Source: Phyllobates terribilis
Lineage: Eukaryota
Assembly: GCF_046119375.1 (NCBI RefSeq)
Contig: NW_027362764.1
Coordinates: 480,190,001 to 480,254,000, forward strand
Length of the DNA: 64,000 nucleotides
Direction of reading: 5' to 3'
Shown here: piece by piece, positions 20,880-57,868 of the stretch
Layout of the letters: each line of letters opens with the position of its first letter
Position numbering within the stretch: the first letter of the stretch is position 1
Program-made: the position numbers and the translations under genes
The notes under the pieces: generated by a model
Databases searched by the model: none
What the model was told of the DNA's origin: nothing
The model's input: the letters and a program-made list of their open reading frames with translations, nothing else

Positions 20880-21313
20880 TATATTCCTACTATACACTTT
20901 GTAAAACCAAACCTTCTTGTCACACTCTCAACATAATGCCCAAGAATAACCAAAAAAGAGAATTAAAAGAACAGACAGATTAGATAGGAGTGTTATGGAT
21001 CCGGGTGGTGGAACCTCTGTGCTGCGGTGCAAGGAGGGACCCAGAGGGGCGTAACTAAGTATCAACTCGGACCGACCTAGGTCGTTCGGCGGCTAACGAC
21101 TCCGTGACCAAGGAGGGACCGAGCAGAGGGACCAGATGCTACTCTGGGGACGACCTTGTAAGAGAGAAGGTGACTCCCACGGGTCAGATGGCTGGGACTG
21201 ACCGATACTGCAGATGGGCACAGCAGGCAGGCTGACGAGAGATCCGGGTAGATGAACTGGCAGAGACAGCAGGCGACAGGCAGGAGCCTCTAGGTAGGCT
21301 GTCAGGTGGTCAA

Positions 21314-21589
21314 GGCAAGTGACAGGCAGGAGCCTCCAGGTAGGCAGACAGGTGGTCACGGCAAGTGACAGGCAGGAGCCTCTAGGTAGGCTGTCAGGTG
21401 GTCACGGCAAGTGATGGGCAGGAGCCTCCAGGTAGGCAGAGAGGTGGTCACGGCAAGTGACAGGCAGGAGCCTCTAGGTAGGCTGTCAGGTGGTCACGAC
21501 AAATGACGGGCAGGAGCCTCCAGGTAGGCAGACAAGTGGTCACGGCAAGTGACAGACAGGAGCCTCCAGGTAGGCAGACAGGTGGTCAC
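21314..21589. repeat. 46-bp tandem repeat inside element A LTRs (6 copies here, 4 copies at 34891-35074)
   Basis: Unit GGCAAGTGACAGGCAGGAGCCTC(C/T)AGGTAGGC(AGA/TGT)CAGGTGGTCAC. Confidence 0.92.
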
Positions 21590-29008: not shown

Positions 29009-30223
29009 TGTAAATGAAGTAAAATAGCTTACACTTGCACTATCAATGGAAAAAGGGTAATAAAGAGTAGATTAGAACCGTGGAAGAGGAAAACCACAGT
29101 TATTGTTTACTGGGGTATACCACACTTTTTTAAATAGAGATATTTGCAGCTGAACAGTGAGCGACACACTCAAACTGCTTTTTTTTTAGATACCAAAGGC
29201 CCAAAACTGGATAGTACAGCGATTTGACCCGTGGAACTGCGAAACCACACTGGGATGTCGGGCCTACACAAGACTATTTTCAACAGATATATTTTTATGT
29301 CACAACAGTCAGGAGACACTACTGTTTTTCTTTACGGAAAAAACTACCAAAACCTGAATAATAGAGATTTTTTACCGTGGAACAGCAAAACCACAGTTAT
29401 AATTTACTGGTGTATACCAGGCTTTTTAAAATATATATATATTTGCGGCTGAACAGTGAGCAACACACTCAAACTGTTTTTTTTTAGATACAAATGGCCC
29501 AAAAGTGGATAATACAGAGGTTTGTACCGTGGAACTGCAAAACCACACTTGTATTTCTCGGGCCTATACCAGACTATTTTCAACAGATATATTTGTGTGT
29601 GAAAAATCAGGGAGACACTATTTTTTTTTTTTTACAGCAAAAAATGCAAAAAGCAGGATAATAGAGATTTTTTACCGTGGAACAGCAAAAGCACACTTCT
29701 GTCTCTCTGGCCTACACCAGACTATTTTCAACAGATATATTTGTGTCTCCTGCCCGAGTAACCCGGAAATGCTCGGTGCTCGCCGAACATCCCGAGTAGC
29801 GTGATGCTCGGGCGAGTATCGAGCAGTGTCGAGCATGTTCGCTCAACACTAGTGGTCACGGAAAGTGACGGTCAGGAGCCTCCAGGTAGGCTGACAGGTA
29901 ACAGGCAGGTGCTTCCAGGTAAGCAGGCGGGCAAAGCCCATAGACAGACTGCCGGACTGAACGGAAGACAGACTGTCGGGCTGAAGAGTAGTCAGGCTGG
30001 CGGACTGGACTGATAGTCAGGCTGGCGGGCAGGACTAGTAGTCAGGCTAGCAGTGGGACCTGAGGGCTGAAGCAGAGGTAAGTACACTGTACATCAACTA
30101 TTGCTCCGACACCTCCATATTGGAGGAGGTGCTTTATATATGGGAGGACCTCCGGCAATTGGCCGGGGACTCCTTAGGGCGGCGCACGCGGCCCCTTTAA
30201 GAGGGAGGGAGCGCGCTCGCGCC

Positions 30224-33200
30224 CTAAGCACAGTGCCCGGGAATCAGCGCGCGCCGGCAGAAGCAGGAAGAGGAGCGCTGGAGGACGTCGGGCGGGGAGC
30301 GCGGCGGTGAGAGGGACGGCGTCTCTACCTGGCAGGGGGCAGAGACGCCGATGCTACAGTACCCCCCCTTACGCCCCCTCTTTTTTAGGCCAAAAAGAAA
30401 ATTTTCAAGGAGAAGCGGGGCATGAATGTTCTCCCTGGGTTCCCAAGTTCTCTCCTCTGGGCCAAACCCCTTCCAATCCACCAGAAAAAAGGTTTTTCCT
30501 CTTACCGTCTTGGTGGTCAGAATGTTCTCTACCTCAAAAAGGTCCTCAGCGGAAACTGGAGCAGGGGGAGTACCTGGACTGTTGGAAAAAGAATTAAACA
30601 CAACTGGTTTGAGGAGAGATACGTGGAAGGAGTTGGGAATCAGTAAGGTGGCCGGGAGTTTTAACTTGTAGGCCACTGGGTTGATTGGTTTCAGGACTTC
30701 AAATGGACCGATGAACCAAGGACCCAATTTGTAAGAGGGTATTTTGAGCCGAACATGTTTGGAGGAGAGCCAAACCTTGTCTCCTGGACGGAATTAAGGC
30801 GGATCCAGACGTCTCTTGTCAGCATATCTCTTCATCCGCTCGGAGGACTGAAGAAGTGCGGACCTAGTGTTTTCCCAAATGGTGGAAAATTCGCAGACCA
30901 GAGACTCCACGGCAGGGTTGTCCACGGAAGTGGAGACGGGAAACGGAATCCGGGGATGTTGACCATAGTCTACAAAGAACGGGGACTTGGAAGTCGATTC
31001 GCTCTCATGGTTGTTGTAGGAGAATTCGGCCCATGGTAGGAGGTTCACCCAATCGGTATGGTGAGCATTAACAAAGTGCCGGATGTAGCTGGTAAGGATC
31101 TGGTTGATACGCTCCACTTGGCCATTGGACTGTGGATGGTAAGCGGAAGAGAAATCCAGGGTGACATCCAGCAGTTTACACATAGCTCTCCAGAAGCATG
31201 AGGTGAATTGAACCCCTCGATCCGACACAATGTGGAGGGGTAGGCCATGGAGACGGAAGATGTGAAAGAAGAAGTCCTTAGCCGGCTCTGATGCGGACGG
31301 GAGACCAGGCAGAGGGATGAAGTGGGCCATTTTAGAAAAGCGGTCGGCGACCACCCAAATGACTGTACAGCCGGCAGAAACAGGGAGATCTGTAATAAAG
31401 TTCATAGCAATGTGTTGCCAAGGGGCAGCAGGTACGGGAAGAGGCAGGAGGTGACCGGCTGGAAGATGTCTGGGAACTTTGTTGCGGGCACAAGATGAAC
31501 AGGCCGCAACGAAGTCTACCACATCCTTGCGCAGGGTAGGCCACCAGTAATGCCGGGTAATGAGCAGGAAAGTTTTCTTTTGACCAGCATGGCCGGCTAG
31601 TTTAGATGAATGACCCCAGTGAAGAATCTTCTGCCGATCTGGAACCGTTACAAACATCTTACCGGGTGGGAGACGAGTCAGATCTAAGGGGGCCACATTC
31701 ATCACTTTGGAGGGGTCGATGATGTGCATAGGCTCCTCCTCTAGATCGGCGGACAGGAAGGATTGGGACAAGGCGTCAGCTTTAACATTCTTGTCCGCCG
31801 GGCGGAAATGTAGGATAAAGTCGAAGCGAGCGAAGAACAAAGACCACCGGGCCTGACGCGGATTGAGTCTTTGGGCATTCTGGAGATATGCAAGGTTTTT
31901 GTGATCAGTATAGATGATCACTGGGTATAGAGCCCCTTCAAGCAGGTAACGCCACTCCTCCAGCGCCAATTTGAGGGCTAGCAGTTCTCGGTCTCCTATG
32001 GAGTAGTTGCGCTCAGACGAGGAGAAGAGTTTGGAGAAGAAGCCGCAGGTTACCATTCTCCCGGATGAAGATCTTTGGGTGAGCACCGCTCCGGCTCCGG
32101 AGGAGGAAGCATCAACCTCCAGGAAGAACTGTTTGCTGCAGTCCGGACGGTGCAGCACTGGGGCAGAGGAGAAGGCTTGCTTTAAGGAAAGGAAGGCCTC
32201 CTCAGCTTCGGGCGGCCATACCTTGGGATTTTCTCCCTTACGGGTGAGCGCAGAGATAGGAGCAGTCCGGAAAGAGAAGTGCGGGAAGAAGAGACGGTAG
32301 TAGTTGGCGAAGCCCAGGAATCGCTGAATCGCCTTCAACCCCTCCGGACGGGGCCACTTTAAGACGGAAGAGAGCTTCTCGGGGTCCATTCTTAGACCTG
32401 TCTGGGAGATAATATAGCCCAGGAATGGAAGGGAGGTCTGTTCGAAGAGGCACTTCTCAAATTTGGCATAGAGGTGATTCTGCCTGAGCCTAAGCAGGAC
32501 CTGACGAACATCCCTCTGGTGTGTGGGATGGTCCGGAGAGAAGACCAAGACGTCATCCAGGTACACCACCACACAGGAATATAGAAGGTCACCGAAGATG
32601 TCATTGACTAATTCTTGGAAGACGGCGGGAGCATTACAGAGAACGAAGGGCATCACACGGTATTCATAGTGACCGTCCCAGGTATTGAATGCCGTCTTCC
32701 ACTCGTCTCCTTGACGGATCCGGACCAGGTTATACGCCCCACGTAGATCCAGCTTGGAAAAGATCCTGGCGCCCTTAAGGCGGTCAAACAACTTGGAGAT
32801 GAGCGGCAGGGGGTATTTGTTTTTGACCGTGATTTGATTGAGTCCTCTATAGTCAATACAGGGGCGTAGCGAGCCATCCTTCTTCTTGGCGAAGAAGAAT
32901 CCGGCTCCAGCCGGGGAGGTAGATTTCCGGATGAATCCCCTAGCCAGATTCTCCTTAATGTACTCCGACATGGCCCGGGTTTCGGCCGACGACAACGGGT
33001 AAATACGCCCACGGAGTGGAGTGGCTCCGGGTACCAGGTTGATCGGGCAATCATATGGCCTATGAGGTGGCAGTGTCTCTGCTTCCTTTTTGTCGAAGAC
33101 ATCTGCATAGGACCAGTAAGGTGCCGGTAAACCGGGTAGATTAGCCGGGGTGGGTGGAGGATGAACCGGGCGGACCGGGACCAGACAGGTCTTATGGCAA

Positions 33201-34565: not shown

Positions 34566-35743
34566 ACTGTTACGGATCCGGGTGGTGGAACCTCTGTGCT
34601 GCGGTGCAAGGAGGGACCCAGAGGGGCGTAACTAAGTATCAACTCGGACCGACCTAGGTCGTACGGCGGCTAACGACTCCGTGACCAGGGAGGGACCAAG
34701 CAGAGGGACCAGGTGCTACTCTGGGGACGACCTTGCAAGAGAGCAGGTGACTCCCACGGGTCAGATGGCTGGGACTGACCGATACTGCAGATGGGCACAG
34801 CAGGCAGGCTGACGAGAGATCCGGGTAGATGAACTGGCAGAGACAGCAGGCGACAGGCGGGAGCCTCTAGGTAGGCTGTCAGGTGGTCACGGCAAGTGAT
34901 GGGCAGGAGCCTCCAGGTAGGCAGACAGGTGGTCACGGCAAGTGACAGGCGGGAGCCTCTAGGTAGGCTGTCAGGTGGTCACGGCAAGTGATGGGCAGGA
35001 GCCTCCAGGTAGGCAGACAGATGGTCACGGCAAGTGACAGGCAGGAGCCTCCAGGTAGGCAGACAGGTGGTCACGGAAAGTGACGGGCAGGAGCCTCCAG
35101 GTAGGCTGACAGGTAACAGGCAGGTGCTTCCAGGAAAGCAGGCGGGCAAAGCCCATAGACAGACTGGGGGACTGAACGGAAGACAGACTGTCGGGCTGAA
35201 GAGTAGTCACCCTGGCGGACTGGACTGATAGTCAGGCTGGCGGGCATGACAAGTAGTCAGGCTAGCAGCGGGACCTGAGGGCTGAAGCAGAGGTAAGTAC
35301 ACTGTACATCAACTATTGCTCTGACACCTCGATATTGGAGGAGGTGCTTTATATATGGGAGGACCTCCGGCAATTGGCCAGGGACTCCTTAGGGTGGCGC
35401 GCGCGGCCCCTTTAAGAGGGAGGGAGAGCGCGCCCTAAGCACAGTGCCCGGGAAGCAGCGCGCACCGGCAGAAGCAGGAAGAGGAGCGCTGAAGGACATT
35501 GGGCGGGGAGCGCGGCGGTGAGAGGGACGGCGTCTCTGCCTGGCAGGGGGCAGAGACGACAATGCTACAGGAGTATATAGGGAAAAAACCAAGCAATGTG
35601 AACTGAGGTCTAAGATGGTACACATGCAAGAAATAGGAGCATGTTCACACTAGCAAAAAGATGCAAAACCTACAAAAGACAAAAAATATCTCATACCCTA
35701 CCATCATTATATATAAATGTAAAGCAAAGTTGCATATGAAATA

Positions 35744-35827
35744 TAGGGTACTTAGTGAACTATTTTTGATCAAAAAAAGTATACAAGCCGTCCCACCAGC
35801 GACAAGGTGACCCTAAGTTGGGACGGT
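35744..35827 (-). ncRNA. Predicted HDV/CPEB3-like self-cleaving ribozyme, copy 1
   Basis: P1 CCGUCCC/GGGACGG, P2 UAGGGU/ACCCUA, P3 ACC/GGU, L3 UUGUCGCU, P1.1 G-C plus U.U, P4 hairpin, J4/2 CUAAG (candidate catalytic C at 35755). Confidence 0.65.
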
Positions 35828-36172
35828 CCTACACTGTCTATATTAAAAACCTTACTGTATATCAAAGTTGAAGTAATGCATATAAAAGGGTAGACAAATA
35901 GAACCGGGTCCCAATATCAGACCACCTAAGCCTGTGGTAAGCTACATATATACTAACCAGCTCAACAAGGGGGATGCCACACCCCTAATTTGCACAGAAT
36001 GCAAACAAGACAAAAAAACAAGCAATGTGAACTGAGGTCTAAGATGGTACACATGCAAGAAATAGGAGCATGTTCACACTAGCAAAAAGATGCAAAACCT
36101 ACAAAAGACAAAAAATATCTCATACCCTACCATCATTATATATAAATGTAAAGCAAAGTTGCATATGAAATA

Positions 36173-36256
36173 TAGGGTACTTAGTGAACTATTTTTGATC
36201 AAAAAAAGTATACAAGCCGTCCCACCAGCGACAAGGTGACCCTAAATTGGGACGGT
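36173..36256 (-). ncRNA. Predicted HDV-like ribozyme, copy 2
   Basis: Same helices as copy 1. Confidence 0.65.
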
Positions 36257-36601
36257 CCTACACTGTCTATATTAAAAAAATTATTGTATATCAAAGTTGA
36301 AGTAATGCATATAAAAGGGTAGACAAATAGAACCGGGTCCCAATATCAGACTACCTAAGCCCGTGGTAAGCTACATATATACTAACCAGCTCAACAAGGG
36401 GGATGCCACACCCCTAATTTGCACAGAATGCAAACAAGACAAAAAACCAAGCAATGAGAACTGAGGTCTAAGATGGTACACATGCAAGAAATAGGAGCAT
36501 GTTCACACTAGCAAAAAGATGCAAAGCCTACAAAAGACAAAAAATATCTCATACCCTACCATCATTATATATAAATGTAAAGCAAAGTTGCATATGAAAT
36601 A

Positions 36602-36685
36602 TAGGGTACTTAGTGAACTATTTTTGATCAAAAAAAGTATACAAGCCGTCCCACCAGCGACAAGGTGACCCTAAATTGGGACGGT
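36602..36685 (-). ncRNA. Predicted HDV-like ribozyme, copy 3
   Basis: Same helices as copy 1. Confidence 0.65.
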
Positions 36686-37030
36686 CCTACACTGTCTATA
36701 TTAAAAAAATTATTGTATATCAAAGTTGAAGTAATGCATATAAAAGGGTAGACAAATAGAACCGGGTCCCAATATCAGACTACCTAAGCCCGTGGTAAGC
36801 TACATATATACTAACCAGCTCAACAAGGGGGATGCCACACCCCTAATTTGCACAGAATGCAAACAAGACAAAAAACCAAGCAATGAGAACTGAGGTCTAA
36901 GATGGTACACATGCAAGAAATAGGAGCATGTTCACACTAGCAAAAAGATGCAAAGCCTACAAAAGACAAAAAATATCTCATACCCTACCATCATTATATA
37001 TAAATGTAAAGCAAAGTTGCATATGAAATA

Positions 37031-37114
37031 TAGGGTACTTAGTGAACTATTTTTGATCAAAAAAAGTATACAAGCCGTCCCACCAGCGACAAGGTGACCC
37101 TAAATTGGGACGGT
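37031..37114 (-). ncRNA. Predicted HDV-like ribozyme, copy 4
   Basis: Same helices as copy 1. Confidence 0.65.
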
Positions 37115-37459
37115 CCTACACTGTCTATATTAAAAACCTTACTGTATATCAAAGTTGAAGTAATGCATATAAAAGGGTAGACAAATAGAACCGGGTCCCA
37201 ATATCAGACCACCTAAGCCCGTGGTAAGCTGCATATATACTAACCAGCTCAACAAGGGGGATGCCACACCCCTAATTTGCACAGAATGCAAACAAGACAA
37301 AAAACCAAGCAATGAGAACTGAGGTCTAAGATGGTACACATGCAAGAAATAGGAGCATGTTCACACTAGCAAAAAGATGCAAAGCCTACAAAAGACAAAA
37401 AATATCTCATACCCTACCATCATTATATATAAATGTAAAGAAAAGTTGCATATGAAATA

Positions 37460-37543
37460 TAGGGTACTTAGTGAACTATTTTTGATCAAAAAAAGTATAC
37501 AAGCCGTCCCACCAGCGACAAGGTGACCCTAAATTGGGACAGT
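37460..37543 (-). ncRNA. Predicted HDV-like ribozyme, copy 5
   Basis: Same fold; one P1 C-G pair becomes U.G (plus-strand G>A at 37541). Confidence 0.6.
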
Positions 37544-37888
37544 CCTACACTGTCTATATTAAAAACCTTACTGTATATCAAAGTTGAAGTAATGCATATA
37601 AAAGGGTAGACAAATAGAACCGGGTCCCAATATCAGACTACCTAAGCCCGTGGTAAGCTACATATATACTAACCAGCTCAACAAGGGGGATGCCACACCC
37701 CTAATTTGCACAGAATGCAAACAAGACAAAAAACCAAGCAATGTGAACTGAGGTCTAAGATGGTACACATGCAAGAAATAGGAGCATGTTCACACTAGTA
37801 AAAAGATGCAAAACCTACAAAAGACAAAAAATATCTCATACCCTACCATCATTATATATAAATGTAAAGCAAAGTTGCATATGAAATA

Positions 37889-37972
37889 TAGGGTACTTAG
37901 TGAACTATTTTTGATCAAAAAAAGTATACAAGCCGTCCCTGCAGCGACAAGGTGACCCTAAATTGGGACGGT
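37889..37972 (-). ncRNA. Predicted HDV-like ribozyme, copy 6, P3 disrupted
   Basis: Plus-strand CCACCAGC becomes CCTGCAGC, changing the P3 3' strand from GGU to GCA. Confidence 0.45.
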
Positions 37973-38437
37973 CCTACACTGTCTATATTAAAAACCTTAC
38001 TGTATATCAAAGTTGAAGTAATGCAGGAGTATATAGGGTTAGGAGGATACATTCACTGTGAAGTGTACTGTGAAGTTGTATGTAGATGTCACTGCAGCTC
38101 TGGATGTGACTGGAGTATAAGACATGATGTTAGAGCAGAATAGTGACTACAGCTCTGGATGTGACTGAAGCTTTTCCTGTGCTGTGATCTCCCCTACATC
38201 TGCCTCTTGCATTCACTTGGTGTATTCTTTAACTACACACTGCTCCCCTAACCCCACTTTTATTTATGACCTCCTTGTTTATTCTGCCCTGAATGTCCAA
38301 CATCTGGCTCCACATTAATCAACTGACCAAGATGAGCACAGGCCACTCCTCTCTGGTTCACACCTGAATGCATTCTGTAGTAAATAAATTGTGAACTACT
38401 TATCTGCAATGACTTTAGTCTGCGTCCATCATCCTAA

Positions 38438-38815
38438 GGGTATGTGCAGACGATCAGTAAACGCTGCAGATTGAACGCAGCAAACTTGTGCTACGTGCAA
38501 TCCGCAGCGGCCAGATGTTACAGCACAGTGGATGGGATTTGTACAAATCCCATGCCCACTATGCGTTCCCGTGTTCCTGCGGCTTACTCACGGAGATAGA
38601 CATGCGGTGCGTCTTCACAGACCGCAGCATGTCAATTTCTCTTGCAGAGATGCTGGTCTCCGCAAGAGAGATTCTACGAATGGAATGGATAGAATGCGGT
38701 GAAGCCGCATGTGTTCAATGAACACATGCAGCTCCAACTACGTGCAGCGCTTTGAACGCAGCATCAAGTATGCTACGCTCAAAGTGCTACCATTCCTGAC
38801 GGTGTGCACATACCC
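38438..38815. mobile_element. PIF/Harbinger MITE
   Basis: TIR GGGTATGTGCA(G)AC / GTGTGCACATACCC; TAA TSD (38435-38437, 38816-38818). Confidence 0.88.
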
Positions 38816-39069
38816 TAAGTGTCTCATTGCTTAAGTGTGAGAAATAAGAATTATACCTGAATTGGAACTGAAGGTAACTGGATACTTGGACACTGTAAAC
38901 AATGTTTGTGTTTGTTTTCACTCTCACCCCCTTAATCCTTCACTTTTAACAACCACCCCCAATCCCTACACCTAGTAAGGAACTGGTCATCTCTCCCTCC
39001 ATCCTCCCCATTCATTTCAACACCTCCTCAAAACTATTCCTCAACATTCAATCCTGTGTCTCTCCACAC

Positions 39070-39332: not shown

Positions 39333-41074
39333 TGATGCGCCCAGGGGATGGGGACGACTTGGCGCCCGGGCCTTGTTGCCTGGTCTTGGGGATGTCGCGG
39401 TGGTCGGCTCCCGGGCCCATACCCTGGGCCTCTCTTTAAAAGGGTGGATAATTATGTGAAAGTTCGTGACGCCACCCGTGGTGTCTGGTGAAGACCACCA
39501 GCGCTGCTGCAGTCCTCTGAGGCCGGTGATCAGGCAGCTAGATGGTGTGGCTCCCCACAGGTGGAGCAGGGCCTCAGGGCAGCGTAGAAGGGGGGGGTAC
39601 AGCACAGAGGGGACCCAGCCGGGTCGGAGGAAGAATAGGCACACACACGATAGTTCACTTCAATACCTTTACTGGTGGTGTTTCAGGCACGATCCAGGGC
39701 ACTGTAGGGTGAAGGGTGCATTTCAGGACTCTCCCCAGTGAGCGGGTGTGGGGCCTCCTGTTCTTTGCCTTTCCTTAATAAGTTTCTGACCTGCCTGGAG
39801 CTAGGCCTAACTTTGTATCTGTCTTGCATCTGCTGATCCCGGTGATAGGGCCTTCTATTGGAGTTCACACTCCCTGGTTTCTGGGGTTTTGGTAACTCCT
39901 GACCCTGGTACATTGTCAGCGCTTGGGTTAACCTGGGACATATAGTTCGCCAGGGGTTCTGGTGGTTTCTGCTGGTCCTAGAGATCCTTGCAGACATGGA
40001 CCCGGTGTCCGGTATATGGTCTTGGGGTGAGCTGGCTAAGCTCCTCTGCCCCCTATGTAGCTCGCTACTCCACTTGCCTTCAGCCACGCTCGGGCCCTCA
40101 CTAGGCTACACCCAGCAGTAGGCCTCGCTACTCTTCACCGCTCTTATGGCGTCGGCACGCCTTGGGCTCACTAACCTGAGCTCTCTGAGTCTGGACTGTG
40201 CTCCACTGCAGGATGGCTTCTGCAGGAGCTCCTCTCAACAGGCTTCCTTCTACAGACTGGATTCTCACAGACTGGAACTAGCTCTGTCCCCTGAGGAAAC
40301 TGGACTTCAGACTTACTCCAGACTCCAGACCAGACTGACTGCCTGGCTCCACCTTCCCTATTTATATCCTTAACGGGCTCCCTCTGGTGGTCTGAGGTGG
40401 AAGGTGGAGGTGTGTGTATGCTGTGGGGGCCTCTTGTGGAGGAATCCGTCCATGCACCCCTCTAGGATCTGTGGCACTAATGCGCAGCAGGGCGCCACAT
40501 TCCCCCCTAGCAAAGCTCAGTACTCCCGGACTGAAGTACTTTTTATAACAACAATAACAATAACTCTTCCCTTTATGGGAGGCACTTTGCTTAAACGTTA
40601 CATATAAAACAGTATAAATAATAAATAGATATGTTCATATAATAAGCAACCCCAGAATTCAAGTCTCTTGCGGTGAGGTTCCCTGACAGGATGTCCATCT
40701 CACAGGGTAGAGTACTTGGTAGCTTGAGGGACCTGTCCCAAACCCTCCACGTAGGCCCTGGGGTGGCTGCAGGGCATGGAGATCCTGAGTTGGACCTCCG
40801 TTAGTGCCACGCCAGACAGGTTTTTCTTCTGAGGTCACCTAAAGGGGCACTCCAGGGAGTGCAATTATTTACAAGAAGCAGTTTTTGGGCTACACATAGT
40901 CCTCAGCCACAGAGTTCTTTAAGTACCCTAATGGGTAGTTAGAGGCAAACAAGAAAAGTGTCCATATCACTTAGATTGTCCATTAGAAGGCAAAACACAA
41001 GTTAATAAATACATATATGAAAATACACAATATAATACCCCAGGGGCAACTATCTACACTGTCAGAGTTTCACT

Positions 41075-56701: not shown

Positions 56702-57868
56702 GGAAAGAGATGATGCGCCCTGGGGATGGGGACGACTCGGCGCCCGGGCCTTGTTTCCTGGTCTTGGGGATGTCGCGGTGGTCGGCTCCCGGGCCCGTAC
56801 CCTGGGCCTCTCTTTAAAAGGGTGGATAATTATGTGAAAGTTCGTGACGCCACCCGTGGTGTCTGGTGAAGACCACCAGCGCTGCTGCAGTCCTCTGAGG
56901 CCGGTGATCAGGCAGCTAGATGGTGTGGCTCCCCACAGGTGGAGCAGGGCCTCAGGGCAGCATAGAAGGGGGGGATGCAGGACAGAGGGGACCCAGCCGG
57001 GTCGGAGGAAGAATAGGCACACACACGATAGTTCACTTCAGTACCTTTACTGGTGGTGTTTCAGGCACGATCCAGGGCACTGTAGGGTGAAGGGTGCATT
57101 TCAGGACTCTTCCCAGTGAGCGGGTGTGGGGCCTCCTGTTCTTTGCCTTTCCTTAATAAGTTTCTGACCTGCCTGGAGCTAGGCCTAACTTTGTCTCTGT
57201 CTTGCATCTGCTGATCCCGGTGATAGGGCCTTCTGTTGGAATTCACACTCCCTGGTTTCTGGGGTTTTGGTAACTCCTGACCCTGGTACGTTGTCAGCGC
57301 TTGGGTTAACCTGAGACATATAGTTCGCCAGGGGTTCCGGTCGTTTCTGCTGGTCCTAGAGATCCTTGCAGACATGGACCCGTTGTCCGGTATATGGTCT
57401 TGGGGTAAGCTGGCTAAGCTCCTCTGCCCCCTATGTAACTCGCTACTCCACTTGCCTTCGGCCACGCTCGGGCCCTCACTAGGCTACACACAGCAGTAGG
57501 CCTCGCTACTCTTCACCGCTCTTATGGCGTCGGCACACCTTGGGCTCACTAACCTGAGCTCTCTGAGTCTGGACTGTGCTCCACTGCAGGATGGCTTCTG
57601 CAGGAGCTCCTCTGAACAGGCTTCCTTCTACAGACTGGATTCTCACAGACTGGAACTAGCTCTGTCCCCTGAGGAAACTGGACTTCAGAATTACTCCAGA
57701 CTCCAGACCAGACTGACTGCCTGGCTCCACCTTCCCTATTTATATCCCTAACGGGCTCCCTCTGGTGGTCTGAGGTGGAAGGTGGAGGTGTGTGTATGCT
57801 GTGGGGGCCTCTTGTGGGGGATCCATCCATGCACCCCTCTAGGATCTAATGCGCAGCAGGGCGCCACA

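Follow-up and report, generated by a model that had tools for sequence, protein, structure and literature searches.

Does a tandem array in the genome of the frog Phyllobates terribilis represent a retrozyme-like mobile element which carries a hepatitis-delta-type (HDV) ribozyme instead of a hammerhead? This question was raised by a sequence-only reading of a 64,000-nucleotide stretch (NCBI RefSeq assembly GCF_046119375.1, contig NW_027362764.1, positions 480,190,001 to 480,254,000 of the forward strand; hereafter the window, all positions being numbered within it), which proposed that every 429-bp unit of the array carries an HDV/CPEB3-type ribozyme on its minus strand and that the array is a non-coding, ribozyme-processed retroelement. 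We re-examined the array, its borders, the predicted fold and its variation in sequencing contigs to determine how far this proposal holds.

The array and its insertion site

As the proposal depends on a regular repeat, we first delineated the array. Tandem Repeats Finder placed it at 35583-38025 with a period of 429 bp, 5.7 copies and 98% matches, and a repeat search recovered six copies in register which are 98-99% identical (Table 1). No ORF longer than 49 aa was present per unit. The flanking direct repeat is perfect and occurs nowhere else in the window, which shows that the array is an insertion with a target-site duplication, although an empty-site paralogue was not found; the other Gypsy LTR ends at the same GCTACA but continues into the interior of the element. 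Searches for further copies in the window with a 29-nt core allowing 3 mismatches, by blastn of the unit against the rest of the window and by a descriptor of the fold returned nothing outside the array, and apparent inverted matches near 40.6-40.9 kb were unrelated sequence. No tRNA-like structure or Pol III-type (tRNA/7SL/5S) head was found, and a scan for bacterial promoters and terminators has no bearing on this genome.

Table 1. Features of the array and its surroundings (window coordinates)
Feature	Position	Strand	Details
3' LTR of a Gypsy element	35067..35570	+	Context; ends ...GCTACA at 35570; the array sits 12-13 bp beyond it in host DNA
Target-site duplication, left copy	35568..35582	.	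CAGGAGTATATAGGG; the first 2 nt may belong to the Gypsy LTR end or to a microhomology, so the duplication is 13-15 bp
Tandem array	35583..38023	-	429 bp x 5.69 units, non-coding, 37% GC; the minus strand is the candidate functional RNA strand
HDV-like ribozyme copy 1 (predicted)	35744..35826	-	83 nt, C1 at 35826; predicted cleavage between 35827 and 35826; candidate catalytic C at 35755; J1/2 reads AACU instead of AAUU
HDV-like ribozyme copy 2 (predicted)	36173..36255	-	Nucleotide n equals plus coordinate 36256-n; P1 1-7/33-39; P2 12-17/78-83 (plus a possible C18-G76 pair); P3 19-21/30-32; L3 22-29 (UUGUCGCU); P1.1 G24-C40 plus U23.U41; P4 47-55/60-68; J4/2 C72-U-A-A; candidate catalytic C at 36184
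HDV-like ribozyme copy 3 (predicted)	36602..36684	-	Identical to copy 2; candidate catalytic C at 36613
HDV-like ribozyme copy 4 (predicted)	37031..37113	-	Identical to copy 2; candidate catalytic C at 37042
HDV-like ribozyme copy 5 (predicted)	37460..37542	-	C2->U gives a U.G wobble in P1 on the minus strand (A.C on the plus strand); candidate catalytic C at 37471
HDV-like ribozyme copy 6 (predicted)	37889..37971	-	Probably dead; P3 3' strand GGU->GCA, so P3 cannot form
A-run at the unit boundary	36441..36446	+	Once per unit; the array starts exactly with it (35583-35588); in organism G it continues as at least 21 A; may be a relic of a plus-sense poly(A) tail or an expanded A tract
Target-site duplication, right copy	38024..38038	.	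CAGGAGTATATAGGG

The predicted HDV-type fold of the minus strand

The observation that the units carry sequence in the HDV order of helices is confirmed, with the correction that five copies of six are intact and not every unit. The 84-nt minus-strand string on which the sequence-only reading was based is exact in units 2-4. It fits the nested double pseudoknot in the order P1-J1/2-P2-P3-L3-P3'-P1'-P1.1-P4-J4/2-P2', with a 7-bp P1 (CCGUCCC/GGGACGG), a 6-bp P2 (UAGGGU/ACCCUA), a 3-bp P3 (ACC/GGU) closing an 8-nt L3, and a 9-bp P4 with one U.U, the P1 3' strand being followed by C-U and the P2 3' strand being preceded by CUAAGU. U22 and G27 of L3 are placed as the HDV U20/G25 pair, and a candidate catalytic C starts J4/2 with adenosines following, the function of these residues being inferred from sequence alone. 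Our own descriptor scan recovered the five intact copies on the minus strand. In 3 Mb of random sequence with the dinucleotide composition of the unit, the bare topology occurred 0.042 times per kb, and among those 126 hits none had an L3 matching that of HDV at 6 or more of 8 positions, none passed the tight core filter and only 4 had CUAA in J4/2, which gives an estimated chance of about 5e-6 for one 429-bp unit on both strands.

Against this fit, the Infernal/Rfam search which had been named beforehand as a check was negative, as at E up to 10 neither 35000-38600 nor the 131 nt of 36150-36280 gave anything except weak miRNA-like noise, with no match to the HDV, CPEB3, hammerhead or any other ribozyme model on either strand; these models, however, do not encode the pseudoknots and are narrow. 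The cleavage-site pair is a Watson-Crick C1-G39 in all copies and in the relatives seen, and not the near-universal G.U wobble, a caveat which the sequence-only reading had raised and which is softened by L1TcRz, an experimentally active HDV-like ribozyme whose product starts at C1 and whose P1.1 is a single pair (PMC3185411). The alternative register of that reading, with A(-1).C40 as the +1 pair, was rejected because the -1 base is not conserved in relatives (U in one) and P1 would become 8 bp. J4/2 is also followed by two extra nucleotides, G76 and U77, unless G76 pairs with C18. Whole-unit folds had only modest z-scores (-1.9 for the minus and -1.7 for the plus strand), and an 8-bp long-range pairing of the 5' half of the predicted ribozyme with 36337-36344 was not used, as it is not conserved in organisms E and G, two of the organisms whose contigs hold the family.

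Compared with the HDV genomic and antigenomic ribozymes and the mammalian CPEB3 ribozyme, the motif has the same helix order, a 7-bp P1, a 3-bp P3 (ACC/GGU, as in antigenomic HDV), an L3 with U at position 1 and ...UCGC(U), and the C-U-A-A J4/2 of antigenomic HDV. The comparison of P1.1 with that of CPEB3, which has one G-C plus one U-U and a 4-nt J4/2, is confirmed (PMC4836649), though here the G-C pair is in the reverse orientation, an extra G-U lies between CUAA and P2, and P4 is AU-rich. L1TcRz and its non-autonomous partner NARTc of Trypanosoma cruzi share an HDV-like fold in a retroelement, a product beginning with C1 paired to G in a GC-rich P1, and a P1.1 reduced to one Watson-Crick pair, but L1TcRz sits once at the 5' end of a linear poly(A) element and doubles as a promoter (PMC3185411), whereas the motif here is internal to every unit of a tandem array. 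The R2 and RTE LINE 5' ribozymes likewise are retroelement-borne with a conserved catalytic C, a P1 that is free to vary and a conserved L3 G, which is functionally critical in R2 and is present here, but those elements are autonomous, protein-coding and single-copy per element (PMC3774820), while here there is no ORF and the motif is repeated in tandem.

Conservation of the family in other organisms

To determine whether variation respects the predicted fold, we examined sequencing runs, in which contigs from five other organisms and from RNA-labelled libraries hold the family. The family is very abundant in the RNA-labelled libraries, but as all runs were contigs this abundance carries no strand information and does not separate transcription from DNA carry-over. 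The predicted fold was the least variable part of the unit across organisms. In a variation map from eight runs, 1 of 50 helix positions varied against 9 of 33 loop/linker positions (Fisher 0.0008) and 46 of 276 positions in the rest of the unit (Fisher 0.004). In the organism-G contig, which is ~88% alike overall, helix plus core positions showed 0 changes of 66 against 27 of 276 outside (0.004), and in organisms E and G the only changes inside the predicted ribozyme were J1/2 AAUU->GAA and one base in J1.1/4. The conserved block ends at the predicted cleavage site, where an insertion right after 36256 is followed by many changes, and about 6 nt past the P2 3' end. Both within-family helix changes (36178 T>C, and C2->U in unit 5) give G.U on the minus strand and A.C on the plus strand.

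Conservation without linked compensatory changes does not prove the structure. Soft-clipped contig ends, seen only as unlinked 30-nt pieces, showed diverged relatives that keep 'C ACC UUGYC..' and 'CUAAG' while the P1, P2 and P3 strands vary; the P1 5' strand variants were CCGUCCC, CCAUCCC and CUAUCCC and the P1 3' strand variants GGGACGG and GGGGUGG, and these two sets can pair with each other. Two diverged relatives have A at the critical L3 G position. A metagenome scan with the degenerate core CACCTTGYCRYTGGTGGGRYGG returned 27 loci, all GC-rich, bacterial-looking sequence in which the matching P1 5' strand is absent or only approximate (within one mismatch in 9 of 27) and CUAA is absent throughout, so that no relatives were obtained for covariation. 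A dip in RNA depth at 36250-36279 in runs of organism A was rejected as evidence of cleavage, as other dips exist, organism E shows none and contig depth is not a read-end measure; in organism E contigs cross the predicted cleavage site at high depth. A contig joining 36468 back to 36040 was present in the RNA-labelled run X14 and also in the DNA run X18, so it could reflect a tandem array or a circle.

Origin of the array and competing readings

We consider that the array is best explained as a retroposed multimer of a 429-nt non-coding element whose minus-strand RNA contains an HDV-family self-cleaving ribozyme. In this view, transcription of the minus strand would let each unit fold, C72 would act as the general acid and the chain would be cut 5' of C1 at every 429 nt, releasing unit-length RNAs with a 5'-OH and a 2',3'-cyclic phosphate. 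As in hammerhead retrozymes, these RNAs could be circularised by the cellular RtcB-type ligase, and the reverse transcriptase of an autonomous non-LTR or Penelope-like element would copy the circle in rolling-circle fashion at a staggered chromosomal break, yielding a non-integer multimer flanked by a target-site duplication. Our analysis itself establishes the array, the target-site duplication, the lack of coding capacity, the motif and its improbability by chance, its preferential conservation with changes falling in linkers apart from the helix change counted above, and its presence in several organisms and in RNA-labelled libraries, whereas self-cleavage, the transcribed strand, circularisation, rolling-circle reverse transcription and the identity of the helper element are inferred. 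The interpretation of the sequence-only reading is therefore partly supported. We put the probability that the ribozyme is real, that is, self-cleaving now or until recently, at about 0.7, while the whole retrozyme-like cycle remains tentative and somewhat less likely than not.

The closest systems in architecture are the animal non-LTR retrozymes of axolotl, mussel and coral (Cervera & de la Pena 2020, PMC7229834), which are tandem 150-450-bp repeats with type I hammerhead ribozymes. The array resembles them in its non-coding, low-GC units of a few hundred bp with one (here predicted) self-cleaving motif per unit, a target-site duplication longer than 4 bp, high abundance in RNA libraries, non-integer multimers and occurrence in amphibians, but an HDV-type motif takes the place of the hammerhead and circular RNA is here inferred only. 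No paper describing HDV-type retrozymes was found in the searchable literature.

Some features of the array count against this reading. Units 2 and 3 share a private 3-base cluster, which a single rolling-circle copy of one circle does not predict, and neither array edge lies at the predicted cleavage site. It is unlikely but possible that a real ribozyme works as in L1Tc/NARTc, R2 or RTE elements, where HDV-like ribozymes are established at the 5' ends, by trimming a linear RNA out of a longer co-transcript which is then retroposed by a LINE, the tandem structure arising from an uncleaved multimer transcript, template jumping by the reverse transcriptase or later unequal crossing-over. The private cluster would fit a heterogeneous multimer template or post-insertion array dynamics, the contigs of organism E that cross the predicted cleavage site suggest that many molecules are uncut or religated, and the start of the array at the A/U run could be a fixed 3' end of a minus-sense template. 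However, the right edge of the array is 52 nt upstream of a cleavage site, so that a ribozyme-trimmed 5' end is not what was integrated, and a non-integer multimer with a mid-unit end is what a circular template predicts.

About as unlikely is that no active ribozyme exists and the unit descends from a plus-sense, poly(A)-tailed, SINE-like retroposon which became tandem, the conserved block being a dead relic of an old ribozyme or serving another purpose such as protein or reverse-transcriptase recognition or a plus-strand structure. The organism-G contig, the only one with a long A run, ends in this run on the plus strand exactly at the A-run of the unit, which points to the opposite sense, the helices are equally conserved when read on the plus strand, and the negative Rfam search, the C-G cleavage-site pair, the lack of a demonstrated compensatory pair and the loss of the L3 G in some relatives are in line with it. 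It is opposed by the low chance of the full motif, the exclusion of variation from helices but not from the loops between them, the end of the conserved block at the predicted cleavage site, the wobble compatibility of both helix transitions on the minus strand only and the lack of a Pol III-type head, while the A-run lies at the left (5') edge on the plus strand and the right end of the array is not at the A-run, as poly(A)-primed integration of a plus-sense RNA would require. Least likely is an ordinary satellite amplified at the DNA level, with the flanking repeat arising from an event such as reintegration of an extrachromosomal circular DNA; the unit-end-to-start joints in a DNA run and the variants shared by adjacent units could be so explained, but a perfect 13-15-bp duplication around a non-integer multimer is typical of staggered-nick, reverse-transcriptase-type integration, and neither the ribozyme-shaped conservation nor the abundance in RNA-labelled libraries fits this model.

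The retrozymes described so far in plants and animals use hammerhead ribozymes, whereas HDV-like ribozymes are known in autonomous LINEs, in one trypanosome non-autonomous element, in the CPEB3 intron and in delta-type viruses. It is possible, though somewhat less likely than not, that frogs carry a family of genome-encoded, retrozyme-like elements which are processed by an HDV-class ribozyme with an unusual C-G cleavage-site pair, are transcribed at high level in several species, circularise and are copied back into DNA by rolling-circle reverse transcription, which would make this the first HDV-type retrozyme and a plausible genomic reservoir from which delta-like circular RNA agents could have taken their ribozymes. 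A tandem, target-site-flanked, non-coding element with an HDV-class ribozyme in each unit would show that the retrozyme life style is independent of ribozyme class, would add a vertebrate source of abundant, possibly circular HDV-ribozyme RNAs, and would provide a natural variant with a Watson-Crick pair at the cleavage site which bears on the proposed role of the G.U wobble in metal binding. It also offers a concrete system for testing the proposed evolutionary link between genomic retroelements and delta-like circular RNA agents.

Structure of the tandem array and its insertion site

Tandem Repeats Finder reported a single array with a period of 429 bp, 5.7 copies and 98% matches, and a separate repeat search placed six copies in perfect 429-bp register. 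The array is 2441 bp long, corresponding to 5.69 units, with a GC content of 37% against 46% for the window, and its units differ from each other at 3-8 positions. No open reading frame exceeds 49 codons per unit and ARAGORN found no tRNA-like structure. The array is bounded by a perfect 15-bp direct repeat, CAGGAGTATATAGGG, that occurs nowhere else in the window. The left flank up to 35570 is the 3' LTR of a Gypsy element, and the array therefore sits in host DNA 12-13 bp beyond that LTR as an insertion with a 13-15-bp target-site duplication (TSD), not as a locally grown satellite. The left edge is exactly the A-run of the unit (TSD|AAAAAACC), whereas the right edge is mid-unit (...GTAATGCA|TSD).

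Units 2 and 3 share a private cluster of three substitutions (AAAATTATTG instead of AACCTTACTG), where the other four units and every sequencing run read C, C, C. This cluster is not predicted by a single rolling-circle copy of one monomer circle and requires either later conversion or unequal exchange between neighbouring units or a heterogeneous multimer template.

Coordinates of the array, of the elements of the predicted fold and of neighbouring features
Feature	Position	Strand	Details
Tandem array (Tandem Repeats Finder)	35583-38025		
Left copy of the direct repeat	35568-35582		
Right copy of the direct repeat	38024-38038		
LTR pair of the Gypsy element	29852-30359 and 35067-35570		94.7% identical over 508 bp, both ending GCTACA
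Related partial copy	20991-21589		
Internal 46-bp tandem repeats shared by the copies	34852-35114, 21275-21589		
P1	nt 1-7 with 33-39	minus	CCGUCCC with GGGACGG
J1/2		minus	AAUU
P2	nt 12-17 with 78-83	minus	UAGGGU with ACCCUA
C18	nt 18	minus	follows P2
P3	nt 19-21 with 30-32	minus	ACC with GGU
L3	nt 22-29	minus	UUGUCGCU
C40 and U41	nt 40, 41	minus	follow the P1 3' strand
P4	nt 47-55 with 60-68	minus	9 bp with one U.U
J4/2	C72-U-A-A	minus	followed by G76 and U77
Sequence just upstream of the predicted cleavage site	36257-36262	minus	contains UAGG
A-run of the unit	36441-36446	plus	A6
Private cluster, unit 2	36279, 36280, 36284		
Private cluster, unit 3	36708, 36709, 36713		unit 2 positions +429
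Minor variants in J4/2 and at the P2 edge	36178-36183		T>C at 36178, 36181 and 36182, A>G at 36183
Private change in L3	36231		A at this locus, G in almost all contigs of every run
Inverted repeat just right of the array	38434-38488 / 38765-38819		55 nt, 75% complementary, arms 276 nt apart; may be the terminal inverted repeats of a small DNA transposon
Weak mir-3064-like hairpin hit	38454-38517		far below the gathering score
Dispersed repeat right of the array, unrelated	39333-39596 and 56711-56974		264 bp, 98% identity

The predicted HDV-like fold and its comparison with random sequence

The sequence-only reading had claimed that each 429-bp repeat carries a predicted HDV/CPEB3-type ribozyme on the minus strand, and its sequence and helices are exact in units 2-4; overall, the observation holds for five intact copies of six. 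Nucleotides are numbered from C1, such that n equals plus coordinate 36256-n in unit 2. Unit 1 differs only in J1/2, unit 5 has C2->U which gives a U.G wobble, and unit 6 has GGU->GCA which destroys P3. G76 can pair with C18 if U77 bulges, and this would leave a 4-nt J4/2 as in HDV and CPEB3. The upstream UAGG can pair with the P2 3' strand CCUA in the nested minimum-free-energy fold, a possible alternative pairing that competes with P2, like the inhibitory upstream pairings described for CPEB3 and L1TcRz.

To determine whether the fit exceeds chance, we used a deliberately loose descriptor comprising P1 of 7 bp, P2 of at least 5 bp, P3 of 3 bp, L3 of 7-8 nt, one Watson-Crick P1.1 pair, a C in J4/2 and no rule for the +1 position. 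It recovered the five intact copies along with about seven unrelated loci, mostly AT microsatellite, in the 128 kb of both strands. In 3 Mb of random sequence with the dinucleotide composition of the unit, the bare topology occurred 126 times (0.042 per kb). None of those hits had an L3 matching UCCUCGCU of HDV at 6 or more of 8 positions, none passed a tighter core filter (P2 of at least 6 bp, U first and G sixth in L3, CNAA in J4/2) and only 4 had CUAA. Multiplication of these factors gives roughly 5e-6 for one 429-bp unit on both strands, and the motif is not a chance fold.

However, the comparison with Rfam that had been proposed beforehand was negative, as the 4227 models gave no HDV, CPEB3 or other ribozyme hit at E up to 10 on 3.6 kb or on 131 nt alone, although those models are narrow and cannot encode the pseudoknots. 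The pair at the predicted cleavage site is C1-G39 and not G.U, which is less damaging than it looks, as the experimentally active L1Tc ribozyme yields a product beginning at C1, has a GC-rich P1 base and has a single-pair P1.1. CPEB3 has a G-C plus U-U P1.1, and the L3 G, shown to be essential in an R2 ribozyme, is present here.

Variation of the unit among sequencing runs

The comparison was based on public runs in the form of assembled contigs, which carry no strand and no read ends. The unit was found in DNA runs of the same organism, in runs of five other organisms (coded B-G) and in RNA-labelled runs. At 80% likeness or better, 387-699 contigs matched per RNA-labelled run of organisms A and E, and as many of them are only 80-95% alike, this is a large diverged family. 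Summed word depths reached thousands in organism A and nearly 200,000 in organism E, peaking at 36190-36234, the core of the predicted ribozyme. Almost all contigs in every run read G at 36231, so the family consensus L3 is UUGCCGCU and this locus carries a private C->U change at the position equivalent to HDV U23. In the two RNA-labelled runs of organism A only, the minor variants at 36178-36183 were each present at 7-15% of depth and in 19-33 contigs, which could reflect a subfamily or A-to-I editing of a double-stranded region.

A 428-nt contig of organism G covers 36044-36446 with 38 substitutions and 11 gaps. Inside the predicted ribozyme, the only listed differences in organisms E and G are 36246 and 36248 plus a 1-nt deletion at 36245, which change J1/2 from AAUU to GAA, and 36213 in the J1.1/4 linker. 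We pooled every listed variable position between 36044 and 36402, with ten rows of one variant table left out, more diverged copies soft-clipped rather than counted, and organisms E, F and G sharing most changes and thus not independent. Of the helix positions 1 of 50 varies, namely 36178 T>C, which turns U17-A78 into U17.G78 on the minus strand, against 9 of 33 loop/linker positions (Fisher p = 0.0008 against helices) and 46 of 276 positions in the rest of the unit (p = 0.004 against helices). For organism G alone, helix plus core positions show 0 of 66 changes against 27 of 276 outside (p = 0.004). The conserved block also ends where the ribozyme should end, as immediately 5' of the predicted cleavage site most contigs carry an extra base (an insertion after 36256) and then many substitutions (36261, 36266, 36279 and others), and HDV-type ribozymes need no upstream sequence. 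On the other side, variation resumes 6-7 nt beyond the P2 3' strand.

Soft-clipped contig ends give glimpses of more distant relatives, which on the minus strand include 'CCAUCCC GAA UAGGUU C ACC UUGCCG', 'CUAUCCC GAA UGGGUU C AUC UUGCCA', 'C ACC UUGUCAU GGU GGGGUGG CA', '...CUAAGA ACCCUA' and '...CUAAGG UCCCCU'. The C before P3, the start of L3 and CUAAG persist while the helix strands change. The P1 5' variants with A3 would need exactly the U seen in the GGGGUGG 3' variant, which is what covariation would look like, but the two strands were never seen on one contig. Two of these relatives have A in place of the L3 G, at a CpG, and are probably decayed copies.

A candidate retrozyme-like element with a predicted HDV-type ribozyme

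The sequence-only reading had interpreted the repeat as a ribozyme-processed retroelement using an HDV fold, and this interpretation is partly supported. The insertion, its TSD, the non-random motif and the distribution of variation are established from the sequences, whereas self-cleavage, the transcribed strand, circularisation and reverse transcription are inferred. The most economical reading is a non-autonomous retroelement whose minus-sense RNA carries a real HDV-family ribozyme, which we hold to be genuine with a probability of about 0.7. In this view each unit would be cut 5' of C1, giving 429-nt RNAs with a 5'-OH and a cyclic phosphate. The full retrozyme-like cycle remains tentative (about 0.45).

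The continuation of the organism G contig after 36446 with at least 15 more A, giving at least 21 A on the plus strand exactly at the A-run with which the array begins, stands in conflict with the minus-strand reading. It looks like a plus-sense poly(A) tail, on the strand opposite to the ribozyme, but may instead be an expanded A tract. An inactive or otherwise-used conserved block in a plus-sense poly(A) retroposon derivative is considered unlikely, and a real ribozyme used in linear, L1Tc/NARTc-like 5' processing appears about as doubtful. A further point against the ribozyme-based reading is that neither edge of the array coincides with the predicted cleavage site. A purely DNA-level satellite is the least probable of these readings.

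Full-text searches of the literature for HDV-like ribozymes together with retrozymes, tandem repeats, amphibians, frog or Xenopus returned only hammerhead retrozyme papers and reviews, none of which describes an HDV-type retrozyme, including a 2026 preprint on vertebrate retrozymes and Penelope-like elements that treats hammerheads only. What differs here from the described retrozymes is the class of the predicted ribozyme. By analogy with hammerhead retrozymes, the unit-length RNAs could be ligated into circles and copied by a borrowed reverse transcriptase around the circle, and that would explain a non-integer multimer with a long TSD. Animal retrozymes are described as 150-450-bp, low-GC tandem repeats with a TSD longer than 4 bp when present, and the present array fits every item of this description except the ribozyme class.
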